NCBI RefSeq assembly: GCF_902713615.1
Contig: NW_024055820.1
Span: 1 to 64,000 of the forward strand
Length of the DNA stretch: 64,000 nt
Origin: Scyliorhinus canicula
Lineage: Eukaryota
Direction: 5' to 3'
Positions 13,447 to 62,011 of the stretch are shown here, piece by piece. A model generated the notes under the pieces. The model was not told the origin of the DNA. It saw only the letters and a program-made list of their open reading frames with translations, and searched no databases. How positions within the stretch are numbered: position 1 is the stretch's first letter; each line of letters starts with the position of its first letter. The position numbers and the translations under genes were made by a program.

Positions 13447-14009
13447 AGCTGGCAGCGCACACTCCAACGGACCTGTGACACCTTCAACTCAACTGCCTTG
13501 TTGCAGCTTCGCATGGTTCGGCTGAGAGGCCATGTCACTTCTCACAAGAACACGTCTATTTCTTTAAAACAGATGTCTAAACTTACAAGCCAGTAGAAGA
13601 ACCTATATTGAACTGAAGAATTTGTTCAGCAAATCTCTAACGGCGAAATGCTCTCTTCTATTATTAATGCAGCATTCTGAAATCCTACAGAAAAAAGCAA
13701 CCGACTTTACACAATATTTGTTTCGTTATTCAATGCTTGAGTTGAGTTTAAGAATTGACAATTATGTGTTTCTTATATTTGACCTCTTTGTGTTTTGGTG
13801 TGTAAAATGCTGCAGCCTAAATACCGTTCATGTAGAAGAAAGGAGGGGTAATTGTAAATCAACTTTGAGCCTGGATTCCCACACTGGCTTTTCCTGTTTC
13901 TCTATCAGGAAGACCGTTTTTTCTTTCCCAAAGCTGGTTCAGTTAAGTCTCTGGCATTTCCTCTAAGTCAGTTACAGTATCGTTTGTGTCTGTCCTTTTG
14001 AGTACACAT

Positions 14010-16597: not shown

Positions 16598-17201
16598 ATG
16601 TCATCTGCTACTTTGTTTTTATTCCTCACAGCTGCGGCTCTTTTAACAGGTAGGTTCATAAAGTACGAAACTCTGTGTTTCACATCTTCTGCGTGCATTA
16701 CAGTTAATTGAATAGTTCACTCGACACAAATAAGGAATAAATGGATTCACAATTAGAAATGTCATCATTATTCACCGTATCCAAACACTCATATTTAACT
16801 GGCCGATATATTTCTCAGAATCATGTTTACGATTTAGGGGATTAACATAGTGAAGTGACAGCCTTCCATTTAATATTGCTCTGGGTTCTTGCAGGATATT
16901 GTCGAGGAGATTCTGTGTCACAGACACCGGCTGCAATAGCAGTAATTGAAGGAGAGAATGTTCAGTTGTTCTGTAATTACACCACTACAAGCAACAATAT
17001 TCTTTATCTGCACTGGTATCATCAGTATCTCGGCGGATCCCTGGAGTTTCTGATGAAGAGAAGCAGATACACCGATAAGACAGATAGATTTCCAGGGGAC
17101 TGTTTTTCAGTGAATCTGGATGAATCAATCCACACCGTCTCGCTGGATGTGTCTAAAACAGAGCTGACAGACTCCGCGGTGTATTTCTGCGCGCTGAACC
17201 C
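16598..17201 (+). CDS. TRAV/TRDV: TCR alpha/delta-type V segment 3 (apparently intact)
   Basis: The true leader is exon 16598-16649 (MSSATLFLFLTAAALLT, GTAGGT donor); the ORF-track N-terminus is intron. V exon 16895-17201: GDSVSQ...LFCNY...WYHQ...DSAVYFCALNP. Confidence 0.93.
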
Positions 17202-19786: not shown

Positions 19787-20106
19787 AGTTATTGTACAGG
19801 CTCCTCATCTCTTTGTTTCACAGCGCCACACTGTACTGTAATACACTGCAGCGTCTGACAACCCAACCGTGTTAACACTGAGAGTGATGGAACTTTTCTC
19901 ACTGTCCACAGATACTTTAAACCTTCCCTCAATTCTTTCATCTCTGAATGTGGAGACCAGATTCTGGGTAGCCTTATTGGAGAACTGCCGGTACCAGAAT
20001 ACACAGTCATTTGTAGTGAGAATAACATTGTGATGAAGCGAGATGGTCTGTCTTTGTGTTCCCCGATACATCCCTATCTGAAATATCCCCAAGTGACATG
20101 GAACAG
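19787..20106 (-). pseudogene. TRAV/TRDV: Inverted TCR V segment 4 pseudogene
   Basis: Acceptor ttaacag at 20107. The frame is open with WYRQ and DAAVYY, but both Ig-fold Cys are lost (LHHNV, YYSTV). RSS: cgctgtg (19819-19825), 23 nt, acaataact (19787-19795). No clean leader found. Confidence 0.85.
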
Positions 20107-20538
20107 CTGTTAAAACAAGAATAACATTAACGTTATGACACATACAGGGTCAATTAACTAAAGTGTTTGAGTACATAGGCAGAATAAACTAATCTATCTG
20201 TGTATCTACATATATATCCGCCTGCCCGCCTGTCTGTCCGTCCATCTATCCACCTACTGACAATCTGTCTAGCTACATATTTGTTTATCTAACTTTCTCT
20301 CCCATATCTGTCTACCTGGCATCTGAGAAAGTTAATTGTTCCGCCTGCCTCTGTGGAACTAACAAAACAAATAAAATGTTACGACATTCTGCATCTGTAA
20401 TAAAGCAGATGGATATTGTAACTCTATCCAGGTGGAGGTTTAAATATGGGAAAGTAATCATTCTGATAATCATCGGCATTTCTAAAGGTTCTGGTTTGTG
20501 CAAATGTAAACGGGGCAACGGAAACCCGGCAGTGAACA

Positions 20539-20577
20539 AGATATTGTACAGCCGAATCCGCTCTGTGTCTCACTGTG
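20539..20577 (-). promoter_or_regulatory. 23-RSS of V5
   Basis: cacagtg, 23-nt spacer, acaatatct on the minus strand. Confidence 0.9.
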
Positions 20578-21002
20578 TCTGCTTCGCACAGAGATACATT
20601 CCGGAGTCCTGGACCGCGCTGACATCTATACAGATGGTATTGGACTTCTTTTTTCTCTCAAAGGACAGGGTGTAGCGTCCTTTGGTCTCAGTCCCCTGGT
20701 AAATGGAGGCGATAAATGTGGGAGCCTCTGTCGGTGCCTGTCTGTACCAGGCTACGGAATCACCTGTACCAATGGAGATCCGACAGTTCAGTTCAGCCCG
20801 ATCCCCTTCCCGGGACACCACCTGCTCAGGGTGGGAGCTCTGATCCTCACACTGAACAGCTGGGAACAAATAAAATCATCATAACCACACGGTACTATGA
20901 GTTTGTTTTAAAAAATGCATCAGATAAGAAAATAAACTCACCCAATATCAGCAGCATCAGCGCTCCAGCTGGAAACAGCTCTTTCCTGGGGTTTCTGGTC
21001 AT
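20578..21002 (-). CDS. TRAV/TRDV: Inverted TCR alpha/delta-type V segment 5 (apparently intact)
   Basis: Leader 21002-20942 (MTRNPRKELFPAGALMLLIL, GTGAGT donor). V exon 20859-20578: ..AELNCRI..WYRQ..DSGMYLCAKQ. Confidence 0.92.
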
Positions 21003-23129: not shown

Positions 23130-23660
23130 ATGTTTCTGCTAATACTGGCGGCGCTGTTGGGCGGTAAGTACTGGATAATGTTCACCATGCCAGATGAGCT
23201 GATAATAGATTGTAATAATTAATGATCAGAAATGTCAATCTGGTGGGTAGAGTGGAAGTTCCACAAACTGACACATTTACAAACAAATTTAGGACCTTAT
23301 TTTTAAACTCTTGATATTTACTTCCTCCACTATCGCCGGCGGACAATGCGTAGATCCAGTAACTCATCACCGGTGACAAAACCCGGGTCAGAAGGGGATT
23401 TGGTGCAATTACATTGTCAATATTCAGAGCCAGACACTCGCTACATCCAATGGTATCATAAGAAAGTGGCACAGCAACCAGTCTGGATTATTAGCAATGT
23501 ATTAACTCTGAAGAAAGATGCAGTTTCAGGACGATATCTGGCGGCTGCTAGCAAGTCTGGACAGAACGGTCACCTCAATATGAGCGCCCTCAGAGTGAAG
23601 GTCTATTACTGTGCAGTGAGGCATAGCGTTGGATATAACATAACGTCCCGTAGAAAAAAC
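23130..23660 (+). pseudogene. TRAV/TRDV: TCR V segment 6 pseudogene
   Basis: Leader 23130-23163 (MFLLILAALLG, GTAAGT) is intact. There is no clear AG acceptor, FR1 is disrupted and the D-S-A before VYYC is deleted. RSS relic: catagcg (23622-23628), 23 nt, agaaaaaac. Confidence 0.85.
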
Positions 23661-31166: not shown

Positions 31167-34161
31167 ATGCATGGCCCAGCAAGTGGCCTCGTCTTTGCCG
31201 TTTGCTACCCCATTCTTGCTGTTGTTGGCGTCCCAGGTAACTACTGGATACCAAAAGGGTTCTGAGCGTTTTTTTGTAAATTTCAGAAATTTTGTATTTG
31301 CCCTTTTAGGATTGGGCTGGATATTGGGTCTGGGTGAAAGGGAATTCCACCACGTAACTATATGTATATATAACGTATTTATACCACCGTGTTATGATAA
31401 AGTCAAGTGTATTACTTGCACTTCTATTGTGGGGCAGTACAAGATATTATTGGAAATATTTTGCTACATGCTTATCGAAATGATTTGTTATCGCTGAGAT
31501 ATGAATTCTCGTATATGGCATTGCGTGAACAATAATCGGATATGTTATTCAACATCAGATTTTATGCTAATGCAGTGAAATTCAAACTAGTTTTATAGCA
31601 TTGTGGGGGATAATAGAGAATCATGGTGTAAAATAATGTATTTTGATATTATTGGAGCATTGGAAGATGATTTATTAGAGTGTACTCTTTATATAAGATT
31701 AATTGAAATATAAAAATGTGATTCCACAATGTACAGTGAAATCTCTGGGACAATGTAATAGTTACTGTGCAGTGGGTTGTCCCAACAGTTATTTTTATTT
31801 TCTAATTCATCTCGGGCACATGGGCGTCACTGGCTCGGCCAACAATCATTGCACATCTCTCGTTGCCCTTGGAAGGTGATGGTGGCCTGCCTACTGGAAG
31901 AACTACAAGTCCTGCTGTGTCGGGAGGGAGTTCCAGCATTTTGACCCACTGACAGTGAGGGAACAGTGATATATTAATGTGGCTTCAGCAGTTAATTAGG
32001 AAAACGTTAGAAAGGTCAGCACGGTAGTATTGTGCTTAGCACAGTTGTTTCACAACTGCAGGGTCCCAGGTTTGATTCCCGGCTTGGGTCACTGTTCGTG
32101 GGAGTCTGCATTTTCTCCCCGTGTGTGCGTGGGTTTCCTCCATATGCTCCGGTTTCTTCACACAGTTCGAAGATGTGCGGGTGAGGTGGATTCGCCATGC
32201 TAAATTTCCCTTAATGTTCAAAAAAAATTAATTGGGGTTACTGGGTTAAGGGTATGGGGTGGCGTAGGTGTGTGATTGAGTGGGGTGCTTTTTACAAGGG
32301 CCGGTGCAGATTCGATGGGCCGAATGGCCTCCTTCTGCACTGTAAATTCTCTGATATTAGTGAATATTCCAGATTTGTAATTTAGTATGCATTTTGTCTT
32401 CTGGTAACAGGTTTTGCAAATTTTGAATAATTATCTGTCAAAACTAACGGAATATGAGTGTGACTGGAAAGGTCATCAAGTTTGTTCATATATATTTTTC
32501 ACTTCAAACGACGGATTTGCCCTTGATCTTTCAGGCACTCTAATATTTATGGTGGAGATGCTTCAAGGGAACGTTCACAGGCGAATTTGATTTTGAACGG
32601 CAGAAGCAGGCAGTTGAGTCAAAATCTGATCAAAGAGTTACATTATAATAAGCTTCTTAAAGAAGGAAGGTAAGACAGAGGCGATGAGGGAGTGAATTCC
32701 GGAGGTCAGATCCTCAGAGTGAAAGGAAAAACAGTTACTATTGGACAATTACTCTCAGGGATACTCAAGGACAGAGTGTAGATATGCTGAGATCTCGGAT
32801 ATTTCTATGATGTTACATCGGGGGTAGGGGGAGACTCTAGAGGCGTTTGAAACGTCGAATGACGAGAATATTAAAAGCCAGACGTTGCGGAACTGGGGGA
32901 CCAATGTAGCTCAGTGATGACAGGGCTGATGGATGGACGCAGCGTGCTCTGAATAAAAGCATTGGTAGCAAATGTTTAAGATGAACTTTCGTTGGAGCCG
33001 TGGGGATTGATTCAGTGACCAGAGAGCAGAGCGCGTGGTGGGGATTGATTGTTAAGGCGCTTTTAGTGACACATGCTTAATCCAGGATTGGAAATTGAAT
33101 AAACAACAATAATTTTGGAAGATTTGTAATCTGGATGTGGCAAAGGAAATAATCAGAAGGATTCAGCAAATTGATTGGAGGGGATATTGGTTGGTGTTTG
33201 GAGTTCGTTCGTTGACATCTTTTCCGTGTTATCTCTCACAGCCAACTTATTGGCAATGATAACCTTATCCCGAGGACGGTGCGGACTCTCCCGGTGCATC
33301 ACCTACTACCTGGTGGCAGTAGCCGTGAGCGATTTTCTGGTCATCATCACTACCGTCATCCTCAACCGGATTGGCCGCATCTACTTTCCTAACAGTGTCT
33401 TGACAACGACCCCTGCGTGTGCAGTAAGCATCATGCTGGGCTTTGCCACACGGGATTGCTCAGTCTGGGTGACCGTGGCCTTCACCATCGACCGTTTTAT
33501 AGCCATTTGTTGTCAGAGCCTGAAGACCAGATACTGTACTGAGAAAACTGCATTGCTGGTGATAGGATTGATCTGTGCCATTAGCTGCGTCAAGAACGCC
33601 CCTTTGTACTTTGTCTGCCGGCCATTGTACATCCTGGATGGGGTCCCCTGGTTCTGTGACCGCAAGTCCACCTATTTCACTATGCCCGCCTGGAAGGCTT
33701 ACGACTGGCTGGACCGCATCTTAACCCCTTTTTTTCCAATCTTCCTTATTCTGCTTCTCAACGCCCTGACTGTAAGACATATCGTAGCCGCCAGCAGAGC
33801 CCGTAAGAGGCTTCGGGGCCCTGACAGTCACGGAGACTCAGAGATGGCCAACAGAAAGAGGTCCATTATCCTGCTCTTCGCCATTGCGCTCAGCTTCCTT
33901 CTTCTTTGGACCACCCATGTCGCACATTTCCTCTACGTGCGGATTAAAGGCAAGGGCTATTTTAACAGCTCGGATTTCACTGACCCGCAGTACATCCTTC
34001 AGGAGACAGGCAACATGCTCCAGCTAGTCAGTTCCTGCAACAACGTCTTCATCTATGCAGTGGCCCAGACCAAGTTCCGAGATGAGCTGAAGAAGGTGCT
34101 GATGTGGCCCTTCAGCGCACTCGCTGGTTGCTTAAAGCGGTTAAAAAAATACACGTTATAA
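31167..34161 (+). CDS. Two-exon class A GPCR of the GPR139/GPR142-like family (329 aa)
   Basis: Exon 1 is 31167-31236 (MHGPASGLVFAVCYPILAVVGVP, phase-1 GTAACT donor). Exon 2 is 33242-34161 after tctctcacag. The joined frame is open (990 nt) with 7 hydrophobic segments, TIDRFIAIC and CNNVFIY. Family assignment is from motif recognition. Confidence 0.88.
32015..32355 (+). mobile_element. HE1-like V-SINE in the GPCR intron
   Basis: Head, V core and tail gggccgaatggcctccttctgcactgtaaattct. Confidence 0.85.
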
Positions 34162-34523: not shown

Positions 34524-34894
34524 NNNNNNNNNNNNNNNNNNNNNNNNNNNNNNNNNNNNNNNNNNNNNNNNNNNNNNNNNNNNNNNNNNNNNNNNNNNNN
34601 NNNNNNNNNNNNNNNNNNNNNNNNNNNNNNNNNNNNNNNNNNNNNNNNNNNNNNNNNNNNNNNNNNNNNNNNNNNNNNNNNNNNNNNNNNNNNNNNNNNN
34701 NNNNNNNNNNNNNNNNNNNNNNNNNNNNNNNNNNNNNNNNNNNNNNNNNNNNNNNNNNNNNNNNNNNNNNNNNNNNNNNNNNNNNNNNNNNNNNNNNNNN
34801 NNNNNNNNNNNNNNNNNNNNNNNNNNNNNNNNNNNNNNNNNNNNNNNNNNNNNNNNNNNNNNNNNNNNNNNNNNNNNNNNNNNNNNNNNNNNNN
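34524..34894. other. Assembly gap (371 N)
   Basis: Run of n. Confidence 1.
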
Positions 34895-38750: not shown

Positions 38751-39114
38751 GAGTGAATAGCAGCTCAGTGAATAAATTTCACCTCGGATCCCGGACGAAA
38801 CAGGGACCAAACTTTTCATTTCTCTCAGGTCATCTACCAGCTCCCTCGTTTATATTGAATAGAGATCCGGACTGTTCAGCCTTTCCCGGTGATCATAAAC
38901 AATCCAGTCTGCAACATTCAATCAACGGGACTCTGAACACTCACCATTCAAAAATACCGAGATGAATTTCCTTTTGAAAGATTGAAAACTGTTCTTTTTT
39001 GCACTCTCTTTAATGAATCCACACAGCTGCTTATTCATTCAAGGTTGTTGGTGACTGGCGCCAGAAATGTTTGCCCATCCTCAACTGGCCTTTACCGAAG
39101 TCGTATTGTACAAA

Positions 39115-40430
39115 TAGAACAGGGAGATATACTCCCCGGGATAATCGTCAGTGAGTTTAGCGAGCTGGTATCAGAGGGAATGGAGAACTGTGAGAGGATC
39201 CCTGGGGTGATGTTCTTTTGGTTCACGGTGAGGGAATCTGAGGGAATGGAGCAGGGGGAGAGGATCCTTGGGGTGATGGTCAGTGAGTTCAGGGGGATGG
39301 TATCAGAGGGAATGGAGCAGGGAGAGAGGATCCCTCGGATGATGGTCAGAGAGTTCAGGGGGATGGTATCAGAGGGGATGGAGCAGGGAGAGAGGATTCC
39401 TGGGGCGATGGTCTGTGAGTTCAGGGGGATGGTATCAGAGGTAATGGAGCAGGGAGAGAGGATCCTTGGGGTGATGGTCAGTGAGTTCAGGGGGATCAGA
39501 GGGAATGGAGCAGGGAGAGAGGATTCCTGGGGCGATGGTCTGTGAGTTCAGGGGGATGGTATCAGAGGTAATGGAGCAGGGAGAGAGGATCCCTGGAGTG
39601 ATGTTCAGTGAGTTCAGACGGAAGTGTAGCAGAGGGAATGGAGCAGGGAGAGAGGATCCCTGGGGTGATGTTCAGTGAGTTCAGACGGAAGGGTAGCAGA
39701 GGGAATGGAGCCGGGAGAGAGGATCCTTGGGGTGATGCTCAGTGAGTTCAGACGGAAGTGTAGCAGAGGGAATAGAGCAGGGAGAGAGGATCCCTGGGCT
39801 GGTGGTCAGTGAGTTCAGCGGGAAGGGTAGCAGAGGGAATGGAGCAGGGAGAGACGATCCCTGGGGTGATGTTCAGTGAGTTCAGACGGAAGGGTAGCAG
39901 AGGGAATGGATCCGGGGGAGAGGATCCCTGGGGTGATGTTCAGTGAGGTCAGGCGGAGGGTAACAGAGGGAATGGAGCAGGGAGAGAGGATCCCTGGTGT
40001 GATGTTCAGTGAGTTCACGGGGATGGTATCAGAGGGAATGGAGCAGGGAGAGAGGATCCCTGGGGTGATGGTCAGTGAGTTCAGGGGGATGGTATCAGAG
40101 GGAATGGAGCAGGGAGAGAGGATCCCTGTGGTGGTGGTCAGTGAGTTCAGGGGGAGGGTAACAGAGGGAATGGAGCAGGGAGAGAGGATCCCTGATAAGA
40201 TGTTCAGTGAGTTCAGGGGGATGAAAGCAGAGTGAATGGAGCAGGGAGAGAAGTCCCTGGGGTGATGTTCAGTGAGTTCAGGGGGATAGCATCAGAGGGA
40301 ATGGAGCAGGGAGAGAGGATCCATGGTGTGATGGTCAGTGAGTTCAGGGGGATGGTATCAGAGGGAATGGAGCCGCGGGAGAGGATCCCTGCTGTGATGT
40401 TCAATGAGTTCAGGGCAATGGTAGCAGTGG
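39115..40430. repeat. 66/67-bp minisatellite, about 20 copies
   Basis: Unit gagggaatggagcagggagagaggatccctggggtgatggtcagtgagttcagggggatggtatca; a central block carries a 67-nt variant. Confidence 0.93.
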
Positions 40431-41497: not shown

Positions 41498-41506
41498 TCA
41501 CTCGAT
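41498..41506 (-). CDS. IGHM: IgM TM2 exon (IE*), inferred
   Basis: Strong acceptor atcttcttttacag followed by atc gag tga, 139 nt after the TM1 donor. An alternative weaker acceptor near 41546 would give VTNI*. Confidence 0.6.
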   Translation of the reverse strand: ME

Positions 41507-41645: not shown

Positions 41646-41773
41646 CTTCACCAGAGTGACTGCAGCGCTGTAGGAAATGCTCAGGAAGAACAGGGTGATG
41701 AATGTGGAAGCGGTTGTCCAGATGTTGCCGTTATCATCCTCATCGTCTTCAGTCCAGGTGTGCTCTGTAGAGT
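41646..41773 (-). CDS. IGHM: IgM TM1 exon (not in the ORF track)
   Basis: (D)STEHTWTEDDEDDNGNIWTTASTFITLFFLSISYSAAVTLVK followed by GTGAG; has the conserved Ig TM motif. Confidence 0.93.
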
Positions 41774-49470: not shown

Positions 49471-49835
49471 TCAAAGCAAGGAAATGTTAACAACATTCGG
49501 TTTACCGCTGGATTTATTAACCGTTCTGCTGATGATCTTCAGGGGGATGGCTTCATGTCCCGCCACACAGGAGTAAGAAGCGCCGCTGGCCCACTCCTCC
49601 GCTGCAATGGATAACAGGCTGTACATGAAGAAGGAGCTATTGCCGTTCTCCGCCATCACCTCGGTGTTCTTGTAGTTCCCGGGATTCACCGGCTTGTCAT
49701 TGACGGTCCACTTGACGAAGATCTCTCGGGGAGAGAAACCTCTCACTAGGCAGCTGAGGGAGACGAATCTCTGAGCGGAGACGTCTTCAGCCGAGGGCAG
49801 GAGGACAGAGACGGACGGTTCCCGCGGATTGGGAT
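49471..49835 (-). CDS. IGHM: IgM CH4 with truncated secretory tailpiece
   Basis: (D)[42 protein letters not shown]...[34 protein letters not shown]. The internal TM donor G|GTAAA is at 49506/49505. Confidence 0.95.
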
Positions 49836-51392: not shown

Positions 51393-51701
51393 CTATTTTA
51401 TTATGGATGGAATTTCTTAAAGGAGTTGGCAGGTCCTGATGGCTCGCCACACAGTCAAACACAGCCCCACTCAGCCAGGCTTGTGTCGAGATGTTTAATT
51501 TGCTGACCACGCTCTCAGTATCTGCCCCAGGCTGGTCGGCAATCTCTGATTTCAGCGGCTTCTTCGCTTCACTCCAGGACACGTTGACTCCATAAGGAGC
51601 ATTCGAAATGTCGCAGGTTAAGGTTACAGTTACCTCCAGTAAGACCTGTTCTATTGATGGTGGCAGTATTGTTACTGAGGCGTAAGTGCAAACGGAAGAA
51701 T
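51393..51701 (-). CDS. IGHM: IgM CH3 exon
   Basis: 309 nt, phase 1/1, AG/GT boundaries; TLTCDIS...VSW...[22 protein letters not shown]. Confidence 0.95.
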
Positions 51702-52334: not shown

Positions 52335-52646
52335 CAGGCGCGGCGATCCTTTGACTTTGGGTGACCTCTTGATGAGTGACCTGGCAGGTATATATCGCTC
52401 TGCTGAACCATTCCCCAGCGGAGACTGTCAGCCGACTGCTCGCCGAGAAGTTCCCATTCTGTTCACAGGCGGGAGAGGTGATAATTCCTGAAGTCATGGG
52501 TTGTCCATTCTTCAGCCACTTCACCGCCATTGATATTGGATGGAAATCGACGATTGAACAGACCATAGTTGCAAATTTCCTTCTTGTGATTTCTTCACTG
52601 GAAGTAACGGTGAGGAGAACATTTGGAGTGTTGACAGGTGGAGGGC
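52335..52646 (-). CDS. IGHM: IgM CH2 exon
   Basis: 312 nt, phase 1/1; [12 protein letters not shown]...KWLKNG...SPACEQNG...YTCQVTHQ. Confidence 0.95.
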
Positions 52647-52858: not shown

Positions 52859-53158
52859 ATGTCATTCCAATGCTCTTGTCTGAGCCGCTGTGTCGGACCT
52901 CACAGCTGATTTTGCTGCATCCCCCCTCTGACTCGGTGATGGTTAACTGGCTGCTCAGGGTGTAGGTTCCCTTATTGTTTCTCACTGACGGGTATTTCTT
53001 AACTCCAGTAGTGATCGGCTGCCCATCTTTCTTCCAGGTGAGACTGGTGATTTCTGGGGAGTAGTCCATCGCCAAACAGCCGTAGGTCACGGAGCCGTCG
53101 GTATTCTTTTGCTGACAGGAGGAGACCAGGCTGTAAAGAGTGGGCGGAGACGGTGTCC
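52859..53158 (-). CDS. IGHM: IgM CH1 exon
   Basis: 300 nt, phase 1/1; [16 protein letters not shown]...[10 protein letters not shown]...WKKDG...[17 protein letters not shown]. Confidence 0.95.
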
Positions 53159-54329
53159 CTGGGAAAGAATGGTCGACTCAACAAGTTAGACTCGATTATG
53201 TGTGTTTAAGATATCTCACAAGTCATAATTTGGATACAGTTAAAAAGTTATCCTATTTTCCCCATTAAAACCTGCATCAACATTTTAGTTTCTATTAATT
53301 CTATCATTTGAGAGTCACCATCTGTCTATTCCCTCTTTAAAAACTCACAGCTCTTGTTCTATCGCTGTCACATTAGAGAAAATTAATATTTTGATGTCAC
53401 CTCAATGGTGCCCCATTCATTACATTAAAATAGAAGGGAAGATGATCTCCCAATTATTTCTATTACAATTTATTTCTCAATCAACAGCACTTTGTGGTAA
53501 AGCAAAATTTCCCTTTTATATAATTACATATTTTGAAATTGCCTATGTTCAAACTAACTGATGCCACCTCCCCTCCCCAACTCACTACCCCAGTCCCCGA
53601 AACAAAGAATGGGGAATTTGCTTTAGAAATACCTCCCAAAGGCAGAATTACCATAAAACTCTACAGTTGAGTAAAGGTTCAAGTAACTCCAATATTTTCA
53701 AATCATGGGATCATGCACGTTAAGAGCAGGATTGGGGCATTCGGTCCCTCAGTTCTCCTGTGCCATTCAATAAGATCATGGCGCAGCAGATTGTGGTGTT
53801 GCTTCCACATTCCATCAGCTCTCTATCCTTGCCACGAGGATCCTGGCCTTTTCCTGGCTCTCTGTGCTTTTCCGAGCTCTCTGAACCTTCCATCGCCTCT
53901 CTGTAATCTGTATAGCTGCTCTGCACTTCAACCGGTTCATTGCTCTTTGTGTCGTCTCCCGGAACTCTCCACTGGCTCTTTGCACTTTCCCCTGATTCTT
54001 GGCGCTTGCCCAGCAATCGGCGTTTTCCTCAGGCTCCCTACCCTTTCTCTCCACTCTCTGCGCTCGGCTCTCTACACATTTTACCAGGTTCATTGCTGTT
54101 TCTCAGATCTCTCCTTTATAGAGGCTTCCCGTGCTTCCCCGAAGCTCTCTGTCCGTTCTACGGATTATATGCATGGCTCTCGGTCATCCTGTCTACACTT
54201 TCCCCCGCTTCATCAGCCTGCGACTCTGGCGCTACTGCCTTTCCAGGCACCCGGATCCTGGTGCCACTCGTACTCAGGTTTTGCACAGGTTCTCTCTTCC
54301 ACTCACGTTGCAGCTCCCCTCCCGCCCAT

Positions 54330-55560
54330 TTGGTGAGTGGGAGTGCGAGAGGGCAAGTGAGTAAATTGGTGAGGGTGAGCGAGCAGGCGGTGTGATTGAC
54401 GGTGTGTGATAAAGAAGTGGGTAGGTCTGAATGTGTATGCGTGAAAATGGGTGACTGAGTGTGGATGAGTGAGGGTGGATCGGTGAGTGAGTTGAAGGTG
54501 AGGTGTATAGGTGACGATGGGTGATTAAGGGTGAGTGAGCGAGAGGCTTGGGGCTGTGAGAGTGGGTGCGCGTTAGGGTGCCTGTGTGTGGTTGAATGAG
54601 GCTTGACCAGTAAGATAAGTGCATGAGTGAGGGTGGATGCGTGACGAAGAGAAATCGACAGGATGTCAGTGAACGTGAGTGAGTGAGGGTTGGTGCGTGT
54701 GGGTGAGTGAATTATGTTGGGTGAGTGAGTGATCGTCGATGAGTTAATGAGTGTGGTTTACTGTGGATGAGTGAGAATGAGTAAGCCTCAGTGAGTGTAG
54801 GAAGGGTGCGTGTGTGAGTGAGGTTGAATGAATGAGTGAGAGCAAATGACGGTCCCCGAGTGGGCTGGGTGTGTGAGGGTGGGAGAATGAGTGAGGGTGC
54901 GTGAATTAGGGTGGACGAATGAGCATGCCCAAATAAGTCAGCGTGTATGAGTAAGGTATGTGAGTCTGAGTGATCTAGGGTGGGCGATTGAGGGAAAATG
55001 TGAGATTGGGGAGAAAGAGGATGACTGAGAGAATGTTCGCAAGTGAGGGTGATAGGGTGAGTGTGGGTATGTAAGGATGAGTGAGTGAGCGTGGATGAGC
55101 GAGGATGGGTAAATGAGGGTGAGTTAGTGCGGGTGCGTTTACTGTGGGTGGGTAATGTTGAGTGAGCGTAGGTGAGTGAGTCAGAGTGGGGAGCTAAATT
55201 GATTGAGTGCGGGTAAGTGAATGAGATTGAGTGAGTAATTAAGGATCAGTGAGTGAGAGAGGGGTGCAGGACTAAGTGAAGTTGAGTGAATGAGGGTAGG
55301 TGAATGAGTGAAGTTGTGTGTGAGAGAGAGTTTTTGAGGTGCGCGTTTGTCTGGCTGTGTGAGAGTGTATGGGAAAGCGAGAGCATGTATGTATATGCGA
55401 GTGTATGAGAGTGGGAAAACGAGAGCATGTATGTATATGCGAGTGTATGAGAGTGGGAAACTTTTCGTCAAAGAGTGTGTGGGTGTGCGTGTCTGAAAGG
55501 GAAAGAGAGCGAGCCTGTGTGTATTTGAGAATGTGTTTGTGCGTGGATGTGTGAGAGAAA
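54330..55560. repeat. About 1.2-kb degenerate (GTGA/GAGT)n tract in the J-C intron, including a 42-bp perfect-like duplication at 55379-55462
   Basis: The plus strand is strongly G/T-biased with tgagtgag motifs throughout. Confidence 0.85.
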
Positions 55561-56569
55561 TCTCCGCTGCACCCAGCCAAATTTTCACATTCCACATAGA
55601 TACAAGTCTTTTAAAGAAAAAAAATCAAAATCCACTCTGAAACACAAGAGAAGGAAGCAGCAGGTTTACATCGATCAGGAAGATTCCTGGTGCCAACACA
55701 ATGACCTTGCGCACAGAAACTGAACAGACACAAACGGTGCAACAACCGAGTTCGCAGCAGATAGATTTGTCCAATCTACCAACTTCATTGAAACTCTTTA
55801 AATCTAATTGATTAATAGTCAAATTATTATATAACTTATTTGAAATTAATTGATATTAGTTATCAATGTTGCGAAAAATGTCCAAAATATAATTTCGCTG
55901 AAAATAAGCATATCAAATATAACAGATTGAGCATAGTTAACAGAGATTCAGTGACCAGGGAAGAATTAAACAGACCAGCGAATACATTCATTAAAAACCG
56001 ATTACCCCTGATTTATCCAATGCCTCAATTAAATGTAATCGACAAGAAAATTGGGGTGAATCACCGGAATAAAGGAATGCATTGTTTTCTAAATTCATTT
56101 TCGATACAATTTAAAATTCTCCAAAAGCTTTGATATATTGCGCTCCAATATACAACTGAATTGTCACACACGATTTATGTTAATTAGTCAGTATCAATAT
56201 TGCATTGCAAGTTACTGTTATTGCAATTATTTGGCTTGTAAGGTGCTTTGCACTCTTTGATAAAAATAATAAAAAATTAATTTTCTACAATTCTAAACTT
56301 GTTCTTGCCTGGAACTTTGTTCTATAATCTTAAGCAATGTTAAACAACTACCCTCAAATCTGGATGGAAACATTCCAACATGTATACTTAACTTTTACTT
56401 AAACTTATAGTACAAATATTAGTACTTTATCTGTTTGCTTTTAATTCAACTGCCCTTTTTTAACCAACGAAATGTTAAATATGCATATTTCTGAACGTAT
56501 TGATAAAGCTCAAATTTCATCTATTCTCAGACGGTAATTCAAATTATAAATCTATGTGTGAGCATTTCA

Positions 56570-57050
56570 AATACATTCAATGTAGGAACAAAGGAATTAA
56601 GAGCAGATGTAGGCAATTCAGCCCTTCTAGTCTGCTCCGTGATTCAATCAGATGCTGGCTGCTCTCTTCCTGGTCACAAATCTACCTTCCTACCTGTTGG
56701 ACATATCCCTTTAACCGGTTTATCGTCAGAAATATATATATCTCCTTCTAGAAACCATGTGATAACTTAGTATCCACCGCATTCTGGGGCAGCGAGTTCC
56801 AGAAATTCACCAGCCTCTGCAAGAAGGTGCTCCTCATCATCTCAGTTCTAAATCCACTGCCTCTCAAACTATACCTGTGACCTCTCGTTCCAGTTTTTCC
56901 CACAAGGGGAAACATTTGGTCCACGTTTACTTTATCAGTCCCATTTAGTATTTGATGCGCCTAGATCATATACCCTTTCATCCTTGTAAACTCCAGCGAG
57001 AATTAGCCCAAACTGTTTAATCTCTCCTCATGTGTCAATCTTTCCATCCA
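56570..57050 (-). mobile_element. CR1 LINE, 3' fragment
   Basis: Reverse complement of a CR1 3' region (aggaattaagagcagatgtaggcaattcagccc...). Confidence 0.7.
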
Positions 57051-57320
57051 CTGACATCGAGAGAACTCTCCGTGTGTGTGCATATACATGACTGTGTGGA
57101 GTGGCGTGAAAGAGCGATGTAACTCGAAACGAAACCGCATGTATAAATAAATACAGTCGCTGGCATTTTATAATAATTAAAGGTGCTTCTGAGAGTTAAT
57201 AACTCAGACATTCCCTGCAATGTAATTAATACAAATAGAACTGTATGAATGTAGATCCAATTCATACGTGTCAGACATAGTGAAAATAATTCATTCAGAT
57301 CATCTACAGCACTGCAACAT

Positions 57321-57508
57321 AATGAAAAATGAAAATGAAAATCGCTTATTGTCACGAGTAGGCTTCAATGAAGTTACTGTGAAAAGCCCCTAGTCGCCAC
57401 ATTCCGGGGCCTGTCCGGGGAGGCTGGTACGGGAATCGAACCGTGCTGCTGGCCTGCTTGGTCTGCTTTAAAAGCCAGCAATTTAGCCTGGTGAGCTAAA
57501 CCAGCCCC
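57321..57508 (-). mobile_element. tRNA-derived SINE, full length
   Basis: Head ggggctggtttagctcacc through to the (ttttca)n tail. Confidence 0.88.
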
Positions 57509-59811
57509 TTTAAAATTCAACCACCTGCCCTGGTGGGATTCGAACAAGGGTCCCCCAGTTTCTGGATTACTAGTCCAGCAACTAATGAGCAAATGGAGTA
57601 GATAGTTTCTCATACAATTTAATATTTGATAAGAAATAAATATGAGGCTCAGATACGGTCTATTCTTCTATTACATCTTTTTTCTTTTGATTCTATACTG
57701 TGTACTGTACCTATATGGAAGACAAGATGTTATTTATTGCAAAATTAATATTCGCCTTTTGTAATTAATCTCTGTATTTCAATATTTTACTTGTGAACCC
57801 TCAGTCTTGTGCATTCGGAGCATTCCTAAGTTTCACATAAAAATATGAGAACAATTCCTTCACTGCCAGCGACCTCCACCTCTCAGAAAAACTCTTTATG
57901 ATTAGATTAGTGACAATTATCTCACTATCCAACTACAAATGACATTGAAGGAATAATACTGTTGCGGATGCACAGAAAGAATTTAACTGGATACATGAAT
58001 TGCAAAACTGCAATATAAAACTCCTACTTAAGTAACCACAAACGTAATCACGGATATAAAAAAAATTCAAAATCTCTTGGTAACTGAACACTGCTGTAGA
58101 TTCAGTATATTATCATTAAAACAGTTCAGGTAAAATCACAAAATATTTCCAGCCTAGAAACCTTTCTGGTCATGCTAATGGTCTGGGGAGCACAGCAGAA
58201 TTGTTAAAGGCGATTGATGATTAATGATATTTATATGGAACCATCTTTGGATAATATGGAGTTATAGTACCGCTTTATAATTGTTTAAATTATATTAATT
58301 TTACTTTCCAATTTGAAGAATTGTTAATTAAGTAGGTTGAGATTGCGGTAAGGAATTATGTTCTTAATGAAGCCGTGGTTTAGTTTAATCTATAATCATC
58401 AGTTAAATTATTTAAAAAGCCCTAATATACATTTAGGTCTATTCTATATTTACGAAACCTTCCTTTGTTTCCGTGCAATCGTGATTCAAGCTGTTTCACA
58501 GACGTTAACTATTTGCATTTAACCAGAAAACCTGTAGCCACTCAATGTCACCGAGTTTAACCAAGCAGAAACGTTAAACTGCTTCACAAATTGTACTTAT
58601 GTAATTATTCAAAGTCATCCAGACACACAATCTCATCAGGGGGAAGTCACCAAAATCCATCACTGACGGACTGAACCCCGTTTCGTGGAGAAGCTGCTCA
58701 ATTCTACATTCATCAGAACCAAACTGAACATTTAAAAAACATCTCAATATCGAATCCAGCAAGCCAGCTCAACACCAACTGTATGTTCAAACTAATCAGA
58801 AAAATGCCATGATAGCAATACCATTGTGAGGAGGTGGGATAGGTCCAAAATAACATGAATGGTTACCACATTTCATTCGTATTGGGCCACATTTCAACAT
58901 ATTTCATTACTATTATTTCATACTAATGTTTGCAGTAGTTGGGAAAAGCTGCAACCATCAGATGCCACCGAGATGAAACATTGCAGAATAACCAAGCTCT
59001 GGTTGCAATAGTAATGTATGATAGGAAAGAGTGTCTTATACGGTGGCTTAATTTAATCTTCAATTATCACTTTTTAAAACCCGTTCGAAAATCTTTTCTG
59101 TTTTCTGCCTACAATCATGCGTCAAGCAGTTTCAAACGCCAATATTTCATCCAATTAAAGGTCATGGAGCAACTCAGTATCACCGACTGCCAGGTTTGTA
59201 GAAACGCCAAACCATTTCTCAAATTCTACTAATTCAAAGTCACAATCTTCTCAGCAGAAAAACAACAAATCACATCACTGAGGGGTCAAGACTCGTTTCA
59301 TGGAGAAGCAGCTCCATTCTAAAACACTTGCAAAGGAATTAAATTTCAAGAAAATCGCAATCTTGAAACAAACAAATCCGCCTGTCATCAAACGGATGAA
59401 TAATCAAAACAAACAGAAATATGGAAGAATATCACCAGCATTTTGAATAAGCTGAACATGTTCAATACGTAAATGGAGAAACTGAAGATATTTAGCGTAC
59501 ATTATAGAACAGCCAAACTGTTTAACAGACGTTAGGTGTTTAAAATAATTCGGCCACACAGTGTCCTCAACAAATAAACACCAACTCACCACAACAAGGG
59601 ACTGAAACCCTCAGCAGAAACTTTTGTCAAGAAGCACAGTATTTATCTAATTCTTTCCCGGTAGAATCACATGAAACATTGCAAAATATCTCAATACAGA
59701 ATTGAACAATCCCACATTTCAATGAAGGAATGAATTGCTAAAATACAGAAACATATAAAATAACTACTCAAGTAAAGTAATACAATTAGTACACAATTAA
59801 ATGGTTCTTAC

Positions 59812-60174
59812 CTGAAATGACCGTCACCATGGTTCCCTGACCCCAGAAATCGAAGCCACCCATTGTAGTATATCTTACACAATAATAGATGGCCGTGTCT
59901 TCGGCCTTCAGACGTGTAATGGCCAATGAGAAGGTGTTGTTTGAAAGGTCTTTGGACGCAGTAAATCGATTATGAAATCCTGGGGCGTAGTTGTTGTTTG
60001 AAGTACTATCGTACCAAAGCAGCCAGTCCAGTCCCTGTCCCGGAAGCTGCCGGATCCAGCCCATCCAGTAGATGCCGAGATCGAACCCGCTTGTTTTACA
60101 GGACAGTCTCAGGGAACATCCCGGATGTCCAGTCTCTGCCTCTGGCTGAGTCAACACAACATCGGACTGGACAC
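59812..60174 (-). CDS. IGHV: Pre-joined IgM VH-D-JH exon (in frame)
   Basis: 363 nt: (R)[42 protein letters not shown]...[30 protein letters not shown] followed by GTAAGA. No RSS or intervening DNA between V and J. Confidence 0.96.
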
Positions 60175-60302
60175 CTGTAAAAATATATCAAAAAGCCCGA
60201 GGATTAATGCTGGAGAAATGATTGGTGACTCTGGAACATTCCAGAGAGAGACTAACACTGAGACAGTAACAGTGAGAGACTTGGACAATAAAAACTACTC
60301 AC

Positions 60303-60348
60303 GGGATAAGAAAGTCAGCAACAAACTGAGAGAAATGGCCCACCTCAT
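60303..60348 (-). CDS. IGHV: IgM VH leader exon
   Basis: MRWAISLSLLLTFLS + C followed by GTGAGT. An upstream in-frame ATG at 60360 is also possible. Confidence 0.93.
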
Positions 60349-60438
60349 CCTTCTGGCCATTTGGGGGAAATGGTTGTGTCAGGAACTCAGTGAACAAACC
60401 AGCTCCCGGACAGTTGGATTCGGGTCCCAGTGAGCGGC

Positions 60439-60447
60439 ATTTAAATA
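60439..60447 (-). promoter_or_regulatory. TATA-like box of the VH promoter
   Basis: TATTTAAAT about 80-90 nt upstream of the ATG. I saw no octamer in the proximal promoter. Confidence 0.65.
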
Positions 60448-61615
60448 CCCGGCAGAAGGGGGCGGCTTTCCAGGCGCCGCCTGTTGATTCCCTGGTGGAG
60501 GCGGCGACTGGATCCACGTCCCACCTTCCACACCCCCAATAGAATGGACTCAGAGATTTTCAATAGGTTATTATTAAAATATACATTTATCTGTAACGGG
60601 ATATTTGTTTGGATGAATGGATTCGTTTCAAAGTCTCGTCATCCTAATGGCGAAATTACATTTGAATAAAAGCAAATTCAATTGTAAATCAAGTCAGTTT
60701 ATTTCTACACTCTAATTTAAGGGGTGAACATAAACAGGTTAAGTTACATTATCGCGGAATACATCATCTGTCCGTCTGATTTGCAACACCCAGTATCTCT
60801 TCCCATTACACCAATAAAGTATCAACTGCCCAATCGAATTGTTATCGACTCATGCAACGAAATACGGGGCATGAACAAAATTATTCTATTTACAGTGTGG
60901 ATGGCCATCACTGTAAAATGTGGGTCGGTAGACAGAAATAAAATCCTCACATTATACGATGCTTCTCTTGGCATTATTCGAACTGCCCCTGAGCCTTAGA
61001 CAGTCCTGTGAACATTAGCGGTGAAAGAAGCCACTTGCCTGATAATTCAGCAGTGAGTTGACAGAGAAACATAAAATTGATATTAACATTTGACAGAAGT
61101 TAACGAATCAGAACGGACACGGGGATTAGTAAAGTTGTCCTTCAGCATCCAAATCATTGTAACTAATTGTATTGACCACCGGCTGTCTAACATTCACTGG
61201 TGTTGGGAACACAGGATATCAGGACTTTGCGGCATATTACACAATATCACAAGAATAAATGTTTTATCTTCCACTGAAGCAGGTCATGAACTGGTCATTT
61301 CTCCACTCATTGGCAGCAATGAGAGGGATTGCTAATTAATGGGAATCAGCACAAATTAAACTGTACAGAACACGGTGCTGATCAGGTATAAGAGACGCCC
61401 CCGTTTAAATGAGGTCAGCAACTCGGAGAATATTCCAGGAATTCCGGCGGATTCAAGGCCGTTTTATGATTTTCTTTTAATTTTTGTGCCATTCCCCTCA
61501 TCCTATTGGTGTTGGTAATTGGGTCCATCAACACCACTCACTCCCACTCCATTAGGTTCTTAACAAACGGACTTGAATAACTAAAGTGACCTTTATTCAG
61601 GACTAATATAAATTA

Positions 61616-61943
61616 CATAGAATTTACAGTGCAGAAGGAGGCCATTCGGCCCATCGAGTCTGCACCGGCTCTTGGAAAGAGCATTCTACCCAAGGTCAAC
61701 ACCTCCACCCTATCCCCATAACCCAGTCCAACACTAAGGCAATTTTGGACACTAAGGGCAATTTATCATATCCAATCCACCTAACTTGCACGTCTGTGGA
61801 AGGAAACCAGAGCACCCGGAGGAAACCCACGAACACACGGGGAGGATGTGCAGACTCCGCACAGACAGTGCCCCAAGCCGGAATCGATCCTGGGACCCTG
61901 TAGCTGTGAAGCGATTGTGCTATCCACAATGCTACCGTGCTGC
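61616..61943 (-). mobile_element. HE1-like V-SINE
   Basis: Full head, core and tail on the minus strand. Confidence 0.88.
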
Positions 61944-62011
61944 ATCTGGTCAGTTTACTATTTTCCGATTCGGTTTAATCTCAGAATGAACTGAATATTC
62001 ACTGAATACAT

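Follow-up and report, generated by a model that had tools for sequence, protein, structure and literature searches.

Germline-joined antibody genes of sharks have been known since the 1980s. The locus described here, in the catshark Scyliorhinus canicula, raises the question of whether an exon in which V, D, and J sequences are already fused is an inherited gene of this kind and, if so, how it arose and what its product may do. The exon lies in a 64,000-nucleotide stretch of genomic DNA (contig NW_024055820.1, positions 1 to 64,000; hereafter, the window), where a first-pass annotation, made from the letters alone, had read it as a germline-joined, in-frame VDJ belonging to an antibody heavy chain with a hard-wired CDR3.

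The fused exon proved to be genuine as far as its structure is concerned. It occupies 59812-60174 on the minus strand, between an AG acceptor and a GTAAG donor. Its phase is 1 and the open frame begins 2 nt inside the exon; in the correct phase, the translation starts VQS and runs without stops. The Pfam V-set match covers profile positions 2-108 of 109, J strand included, and solved rearranged VH domains align to the exon through residue 119 of 120; therefore, V, CDR3, and the J strand are all encoded by this one exon. Both the 11-codon CDR3 (33 nt, 59878-59846) and its core ATACTACAATGGGT (59871-59858) are found where the annotation had put them. V, D, and J are thus contiguous and in frame within a single exon that has no RSS, the arrangement of the germline-joined class. 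A tolerant RSS scan, for which the 23-RSS directly behind three TCR-type V segments of the same window served as positive controls, detected none in or beside the VDJ exon, which bears out the absence of signals claimed earlier. A strict consensus pattern gave zero matches across the window, TCR V segments included. On the RSS scan, we rejected a conventional rearranging IgM cluster, with separate V, D1, D2, and J segments and their RSS, as a description of this locus. Read in minus-strand order, the interval 60560-59700 contains a TATA-like box, the leader exon, a 128-nt intron, and the VDJ exon with its GTAAG donor. The coordinates of these and all other features are collected in Table 1.

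Table 1. Features of the joined IgM gene and of the neighbouring TCR-type V segments, in window coordinates
Feature	Position	Strand	Details
TCR alpha/delta-type V segments	8329-8636, 9727-9962, 16855-17201	+	intact 23-RSS at 8637, 9963, 17202
TCR alpha/delta-type V segments	20570-20869 (-), 19805-20143 (-), 23346-23640 (+)		
TM2 coding part, ATC GAG TGA	41498..41506	-	9 nt
TM1 exon, ending NIWTTASTFITLFFLSISYSAAVTLVK	41646..41773	-	7.7 kb downstream of CH4
AATAAA signal	49417-49412	-	after CH4/tail exon
CH4 exon + short secretory tail	49471..49835	-	stop 49473-49471; tail without cysteine
Cryptic donor G|GTAAA inside CH4 exon	after 49506	-	membrane-form splicing, in frame to TM1
CH3 exon (C1-set)	51393..51701	-	AG/GT borders
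CH2 exon (C1-set, 72 bits)	52335..52646	-	intact, AG/GT splice sites
CH1 exon (C1-set)	52859..53158	-	contains SSCQQ cysteine
J-Cmu1 intron	53159..59811	-	6,653 nt
Fused VDJ exon	60174-59812	-	363 nt; complete VH domain
J part of VDJ exon	59854-59812	-	starts TTCGATTTCTGGGG
GGC	59857-59855	-	between D1 and J
D1-derived CDR3 core ATACTACAATGGGT	59858..59871	-	13/14 bases vs bamboo-shark germline D1, both ends untrimmed
Single T	59872	-	between V and D1
V part of VDJ exon	60174-59873	-	ends TGTGTAAGA
Leader intron	60175..60302	-	128 nt, GT..AG, retained in genomic DNA
Leader exon MARRMRWAISLSLLLTFLS + first base of next codon	60303..60360	-	ATG at 60360, GT donor after 60303
TATA-like box TATTTAAAT	60439..60447	-	~80 nt upstream of ATG, inside promoter/leader block 60165-60522

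That the fusion is germline is firmly supported by sequencing runs other than the one behind the assembly. In X1, a DNA run with the same species label but from another sample and another study, a contig of 1,189 nt spans 58945-60133 (intron, J, CDR3, and most of V) with one difference from the window and no gap. Its depth is 27.4, compared with 20-27 in neighbouring single-copy contigs. The difference, at 59141, is present at full depth; therefore, X1 is not simply the reference haplotype. The same fused exon occurs under two other species labels. In DNA of organism B (X13), a 189-nt contig matches 59848-60029, across both junctions, with one difference, and in organism C (X17), a 579-nt contig matches 59603-60181 with 36 differences and 0 gaps. 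X17 can be regarded as DNA because introns and flanks are covered too. The join is therefore inherited, and the claim that it is germline and not somatic stands.

The sequences from organism C also bear on the age of the join. In X17, the divergence from the window amounts to 9.7-10.1% in three flanking non-coding contigs. On the assumption that the non-coding part of the 579-nt contig (216 bases) diverges like these flanks, the contig totals leave an estimated ~15 differences (~4%) in the 363 nt of the exon, and this lower estimated divergence of the exon (~4%) than of the flanks (~10%) is suggestive of constraint. The presence of the fused exon in organism C indicates that the join is older than the split of species that are ~10% apart in neutral, flanking DNA.

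To what kind of ancestor does the junction point? Our reference for D1, D2, and J was a conventional bamboo-shark cluster (L001) that we found by its VH match and that is more distant than Scyliorhinus torazame. In this cluster, a V ending TGTGCAAGAGAC with a 23-RSS is followed by D1 (ATACTACAGTGGGT) between RSS, by D2, and by a J that reads CTTGACTACTGGGGCCAAGGG with a 23-RSS in front. The catshark junction has the layout TGTGTAAGA / T / ATACTACAATGGGT / GGC / TTCGATTTCTGGGG. Its CDR3 core, which the first-pass annotation had likened to a shark DH1, indeed agrees with the bamboo-shark D1 over the full length of that segment, save for one G-to-A substitution. A 14-mer search allowing one mismatch returned the CDR3-core site only in the 64 kb, with 0.02 matches expected by chance, and the core string also matches the indexed text of a 1993 paper on Heterodontus DH. 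Because the CDR3 core matches full-length D1, the ancestor of the gene can be taken to be a split V-D-D-J cluster; through this unique D1 match, the junction is traced to split-cluster D and J segments, as in a RAG-type joint.

The few remaining bases of the junction leave some latitude. The T at 59872, which is complementary to the first base of D1, may represent either an N nucleotide or a P nucleotide (1 nt) of D1. For the GGC, three sources are conceivable: residual D2 sequence, N addition, and the 5' end of J. Since the D1-J interval holds only this GGC, no recognisable D2 is present in the junction. In L001, the D1 3' signal and the J signal both have a 23-type spacer; therefore, a D1-J joint implies either that D2 was trimmed almost completely or that the ancestor had a single D or a fused D, and D2 may even have been trimmed in full. 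Light-chain genes joined in shark germ cells show P nucleotides and few or no N additions, consistent with RAG-type joining (Lee et al., PMC2193156). The catshark junction, which has at most a few non-templated bases and perhaps a P nucleotide, resembles the germ-cell joins described there.

Outside the VDJ exon, the gene keeps the architecture of a cluster, with a leader intron, a J-C intron, and its own C exons. The annotation had called both introns, as well as four CH exons and a Cys-less tail, and all of them hold up when splice borders, C1-set domains, and tail sequence are considered (Table 1). Once spliced, the secreted form comprises 1,707 nt and encodes 568 aa, with V and four C1-set domains and no internal stop, and the cryptic donor in CH4 yields a membrane form with an intact 602-aa ORF. 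In total, the 8 exons hold ~1.8 kb of coding sequence without a stop, and every splice site, including those of the TM exons, is canonical. LINE fragments occupy much of the 7.7-kb CH4-TM1 intron. Residues 5-119 of CH4 plus tail align to mu (and alpha) chains, whereas gamma chains end around residue 111, and the best full-length alignment is to mu chains. Together with four C1-set C domains, a mu-type tailpiece start, and a CART-type TM segment, this identifies the isotype as IgM (mu), with a truncated tailpiece. The length of the J-C intron is within the range of 6.3-6.8 kb found in nurse-shark IgM clusters (PMC2435157).

The promoter/leader block (60165-60522) links the gene to a family. In X1, the genomic contig for this block has a depth of 457, compared with ~25 for single-copy flanks, and the window shows 3 differences in 358 nt from that multi-copy contig of ~18x single-copy depth. 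Therefore, the gene still carries the standard promoter/leader of a roughly 18-copy IgM cluster family. In organism C, the block is equally conserved (3 differences in 270 nt) despite ~10% divergence. The promoters of IgM clusters appear to be homogenised or strongly conserved across copies and species.

Transcription was assessed in runs that we term RNA-like, a designation that reflects a guessed run type. Of the words sampled from the exon, 49-86% are present in seven small RNA-like runs, which come from 6 samples and 3 studies; for an 851-nt stretch that includes introns and upstream DNA, the share is only 33-40%, as a transcript would give. In one RNA-like run, X9, a contig of 376 nt aligns to 59811-60156 with a single difference, and its other 30 letters do not resemble the J-C intron. 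The alignment extends a single base beyond the exon, which is what a splice to CH1 would produce, given that CH1 likewise opens with G. The depth of this contig is 10, ~1% of that of the family leader contig (1,116), a ratio that is a poor measure of relative expression. A word search of many other RNA-like runs of the same species found none of the exon. These results support transcription of the gene and splicing at the J donor.

Several explanations other than RAG-type joining in the germ line could, in principle, account for a fused exon without RSS. Rearranged alleles occur in shark blood and lymphoid tissue DNA, and the junction resembles a normal VDJ joint, so the assembly might have caught a somatic (lymphocyte) rearrangement of an ordinary cluster. 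Yet the same junction stands at full single-copy depth in another sample, it recurs in DNA under two further species labels, and RNA-like runs from six samples contain it as well. One clone cannot span species labels, and we rejected this explanation as next to impossible. A primordial V gene that had always escaped splitting by the RAG transposon would likewise be contiguous and lack RSS, but the CDR3 core copies the split-cluster D1 over its full length, the promoter and leader are near-identical to those of a multi-copy split family, and V nests within shark IgM VH. On the D1 footprint and the family promoter/leader, this origin was also rejected, its chances being vanishingly small. Copying of the fused V region back from a rearranged cDNA, whether by retro-insertion or by gene conversion, also produces a fused VDJ without RSS. 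Against it, the leader intron and the 6.65-kb J-C intron have standard positions and sizes, and the exon borders show no poly-A tract or target-site duplication. The retained introns and the gene's own C exons indicate that the gene is not a processed copy; we rejected that origin on the introns and consider cDNA-templated copying very improbable. Conversion confined to the V-J interval from a DNA template is possible.

A germline join may also have been followed by decay, leaving a relic that is transcribed only through the surviving family promoter and yields no useful antibody. A truncated secretory tail without Cys would fit such a relic, as would the odd Cys in FR1, about eight substitutions at nearly invariant shark VH positions, and the low contig depth in X9. 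However, the ~1.8 kb of coding sequence is free of stops in all 8 exons, the splice sites are canonical even for TM exons 7.7 kb away, and the exon has no indel relative to a species ~10% diverged in flanking DNA. The invariant V-domain residues, the domain cysteines, and the tryptophans are also all kept. We regard a decaying relic as unlikely, although it deserves to be taken seriously.

Overall, the reading that we prefer, with a probability of roughly 0.88, is that a catshark-type shark carries here an IgM heavy-chain mini-locus (cluster) whose V, D, and J were fused by RAG-type joining in the germ line. The ancestor would have been a split cluster, composed of a V with a 23-RSS, D1, D2, a J with a 23-RSS, Cmu1-4, and TM exons. 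RAG-type V(D)J joining of this cluster in the germ line would have deleted all recombination signals and left a fixed VH exon with one hard-wired CDR3, while the promoter, the leader intron, the J-C intron, the four Cmu exons, and the TM exons would have remained untouched. The joined gene would then be transcribed and spliced like any IgM cluster, with no need for RAG.

Comparison with conventional clusters (bamboo shark L001; nurse shark G2, PMC2435157) delimits what the joining would have changed. The catshark gene shares with them the promoter/leader block, the leader intron, the VH family, the D1 sequence, the J motif, a J-C intron of ~6.6 kb, four Cmu exons, and the TM exons. In contrast, the ~1 kb of RSS-flanked V, D1, D2, and J intervals of a conventional cluster is gone from the catshark gene; therefore, no junctional diversity is possible. 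Clusters can also be joined in part: an IgM cluster of Chiloscyllium punctatum (L002, BEZZ01001741.1, 5670-5740) has V-D-D fused in the germ line and followed by a 12-spacer RSS, with a separate J whose 23-RSS lies ~350 nt downstream.

Joined VDJ IgM clusters are a textbook feature of cartilaginous fish, for example, of the horn shark and the skate (PMC4279169, PMC5192425). Like them, the catshark gene has one in-frame V-D-J exon, no RSS, its own Cmu exons, and germ-line inheritance, and it bears a RAG-type footprint, here with an untrimmed D1, a possible 1-nt P nucleotide, and no more than 3 unassigned bases. It differs from the other joined clusters in a tail that ends before the polymerisation Cys and in its location beside TCR alpha/delta-type V segments. 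In this regard, the gene is a further case of a known shark gene type and leaves the known picture unchanged. In the searchable literature, we found no paper that describes this catshark locus and its CDR3.

Joined gene models from other sharks allow a more direct comparison. In the whale shark (P0006/L003) and in the smooth-hound Mustelus asterias (P0012), V, CDR3, and J are contiguous, as in the catshark gene, and CH1 of the Mustelus asterias model is 81% identical to that of the catshark. Yet the CDR3s of both models are unrelated to the catshark CDR3, and V identity is only 55-65%; because of these differences, the three joins look like independent events and not orthologues. The whale shark joined VDJ (Rhincodon typus NC_063338.1, L003 10180-10540) has the CDR3 ARDWGGSLHY and WGQE for WGQG. 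No Cmu-like exon was found within 11.6 kb downstream of it, and this V may be an orphan or may precede a long intron. A tblastn search with the spliced catshark protein against L001-L003 matched V regions only.

Another counterpart is nurse shark IgM1gj, a mu-type chain with a fully germline-joined VDJ and three C domains, CH2 having been lost (Rumfelt et al. 2001; PMC5192425, PMC4279169). IgM1gj has been reported as a monomer/dimer with neonatal and epigonal expression and a preference for a joined sigma-2 light chain (PMC5192425, PMC4279169). The catshark gene likewise places a fully germline-joined VDJ on a mu-type chain, and its product is predicted to be non-pentameric too, given a tail without Cys. 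Unlike IgM1gj, it has an intact, spliceable CH2 (exon 52646-52335, C1-set 72 bits, AG/GT), and because CH2 is present, the gene is not of the IgM1gj type. The annotation had proposed a different innate-like antibody: the difference from IgM1gj is upheld, and an innate-like role would be plausible. The gene may act similarly to IgM1gj.

What the encoded chain may do can be approached through its residues. The V of the catshark gene conforms to every column that does not vary in a set of ten VH sequences from sharks and chimaera, and no domain cysteine or tryptophan has been lost. At the VH/VL interface, residues Q39, G44, L45, W47, and W103 (Kabat numbering) are conventional, as is the SSCQQ Cys of CH1, and their retention leads us to expect pairing with light chains. 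The tail ends short of the polymerisation/J-chain cysteine; hence, the secreted form is predicted to stay monomeric, and the membrane form could serve as an invariant B-cell receptor. At the same time, FR1 has an extra Cys (PGCSL, where others have G or A), and about eight framework positions that hardly vary in other shark VH are changed. Among database VH sequences, the closest match comes from Scyliorhinus torazame and is no more than 72% identical, which marks this V, on present comparisons, as divergent and long isolated. Relaxed constraint could explain the truncated tail, the FR1 Cys, and the framework changes; the same features are compatible both with slow decay and with a specialised invariant receptor. 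The odds that the chain has a function at the protein level seem roughly even. The more specific proposal of a selected, RAG-independent antibody, with a fixed VH paratope retained among catshark species ~10% apart in neutral DNA, use as an invariant B-cell receptor, and monomer-only secretion through loss of the tail Cys, is a tentative one.

The surroundings of the gene place it in a region of combined antibody and TCR genes. The 3' end of the IgM gene faces an array of TCR alpha/delta-type V segments (Table 1) whose best single-domain PDB matches are TCR alpha chains. In these unjoined segments, the V-set match extends only to about position 93, compared with 108 for the Ig exon. One minus-strand copy, with YYS for YYC, is probably a pseudogene. 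In elasmobranchs, catshark included, IgH clusters have been described as linked to TCR alpha/delta (PMC12227049). As in that linkage, the window has an IgM cluster ~20-50 kb from TCR alpha/delta-type V segments with 23-RSS; in the accessible portion of that paper, we found no mention of the joined state of the catshark cluster.

Other elements of the window deserve mention. An intronless ORF of 328 aa for a rhodopsin-family GPCR (33175-34161, plus strand; 7tm_1, 68 bits) separates the TCR V array from the IgM TM exons, and a gap of 371 N (34524-34894) comes after it. Two near-identical 114-codon ORFs, 2.3 kb apart (11303-11647 and 13622-13966), indicate that part of the TCR V region was recently duplicated in tandem. 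Four copies of a 31-nt motif, GGAATGTGGCGACTAGGGGCTTTTCACAGTA, are present, at 3293 (-), 14432 (-), 42550 (+), and 57381 (-), as part of an interspersed repeat; the end of this repeat mimics an RSS heptamer with a weak nonamer and leads to false RSS calls. A minisatellite-like tandem repeat with strong GC skew, the units of which read GMVSEGMEQGERIPGVMVSEFR, extends over 38982-40235. Finally, 61616-61950 is a hyper-abundant repeat, the contig depths of which add up to 10^5 to 10^7 in each run mapped to the window, the single RNA-like one included.

Nowhere is the rewriting of the germ line by the RAG recombinase clearer than in the joined Ig genes of sharks, and their products are, to our knowledge, the only antibodies with an inherited binding site. 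The catshark gene is a clean, datable example of this process, with a readable D1 footprint, intact membrane and secreted reading frames, and a secreted form that is predicted to be monomer-only. It gives those who work on catsharks a defined CDR3 to trace in development and in serum, and it adds one more locus for the annotation of the IgH/TCR alpha-delta region. If it is a selected antibody, the gene would be a second, independently evolved counterpart of IgM1gj, in which a small, pre-made IgM would have been reached by loss of the tail and not by loss of CH2.
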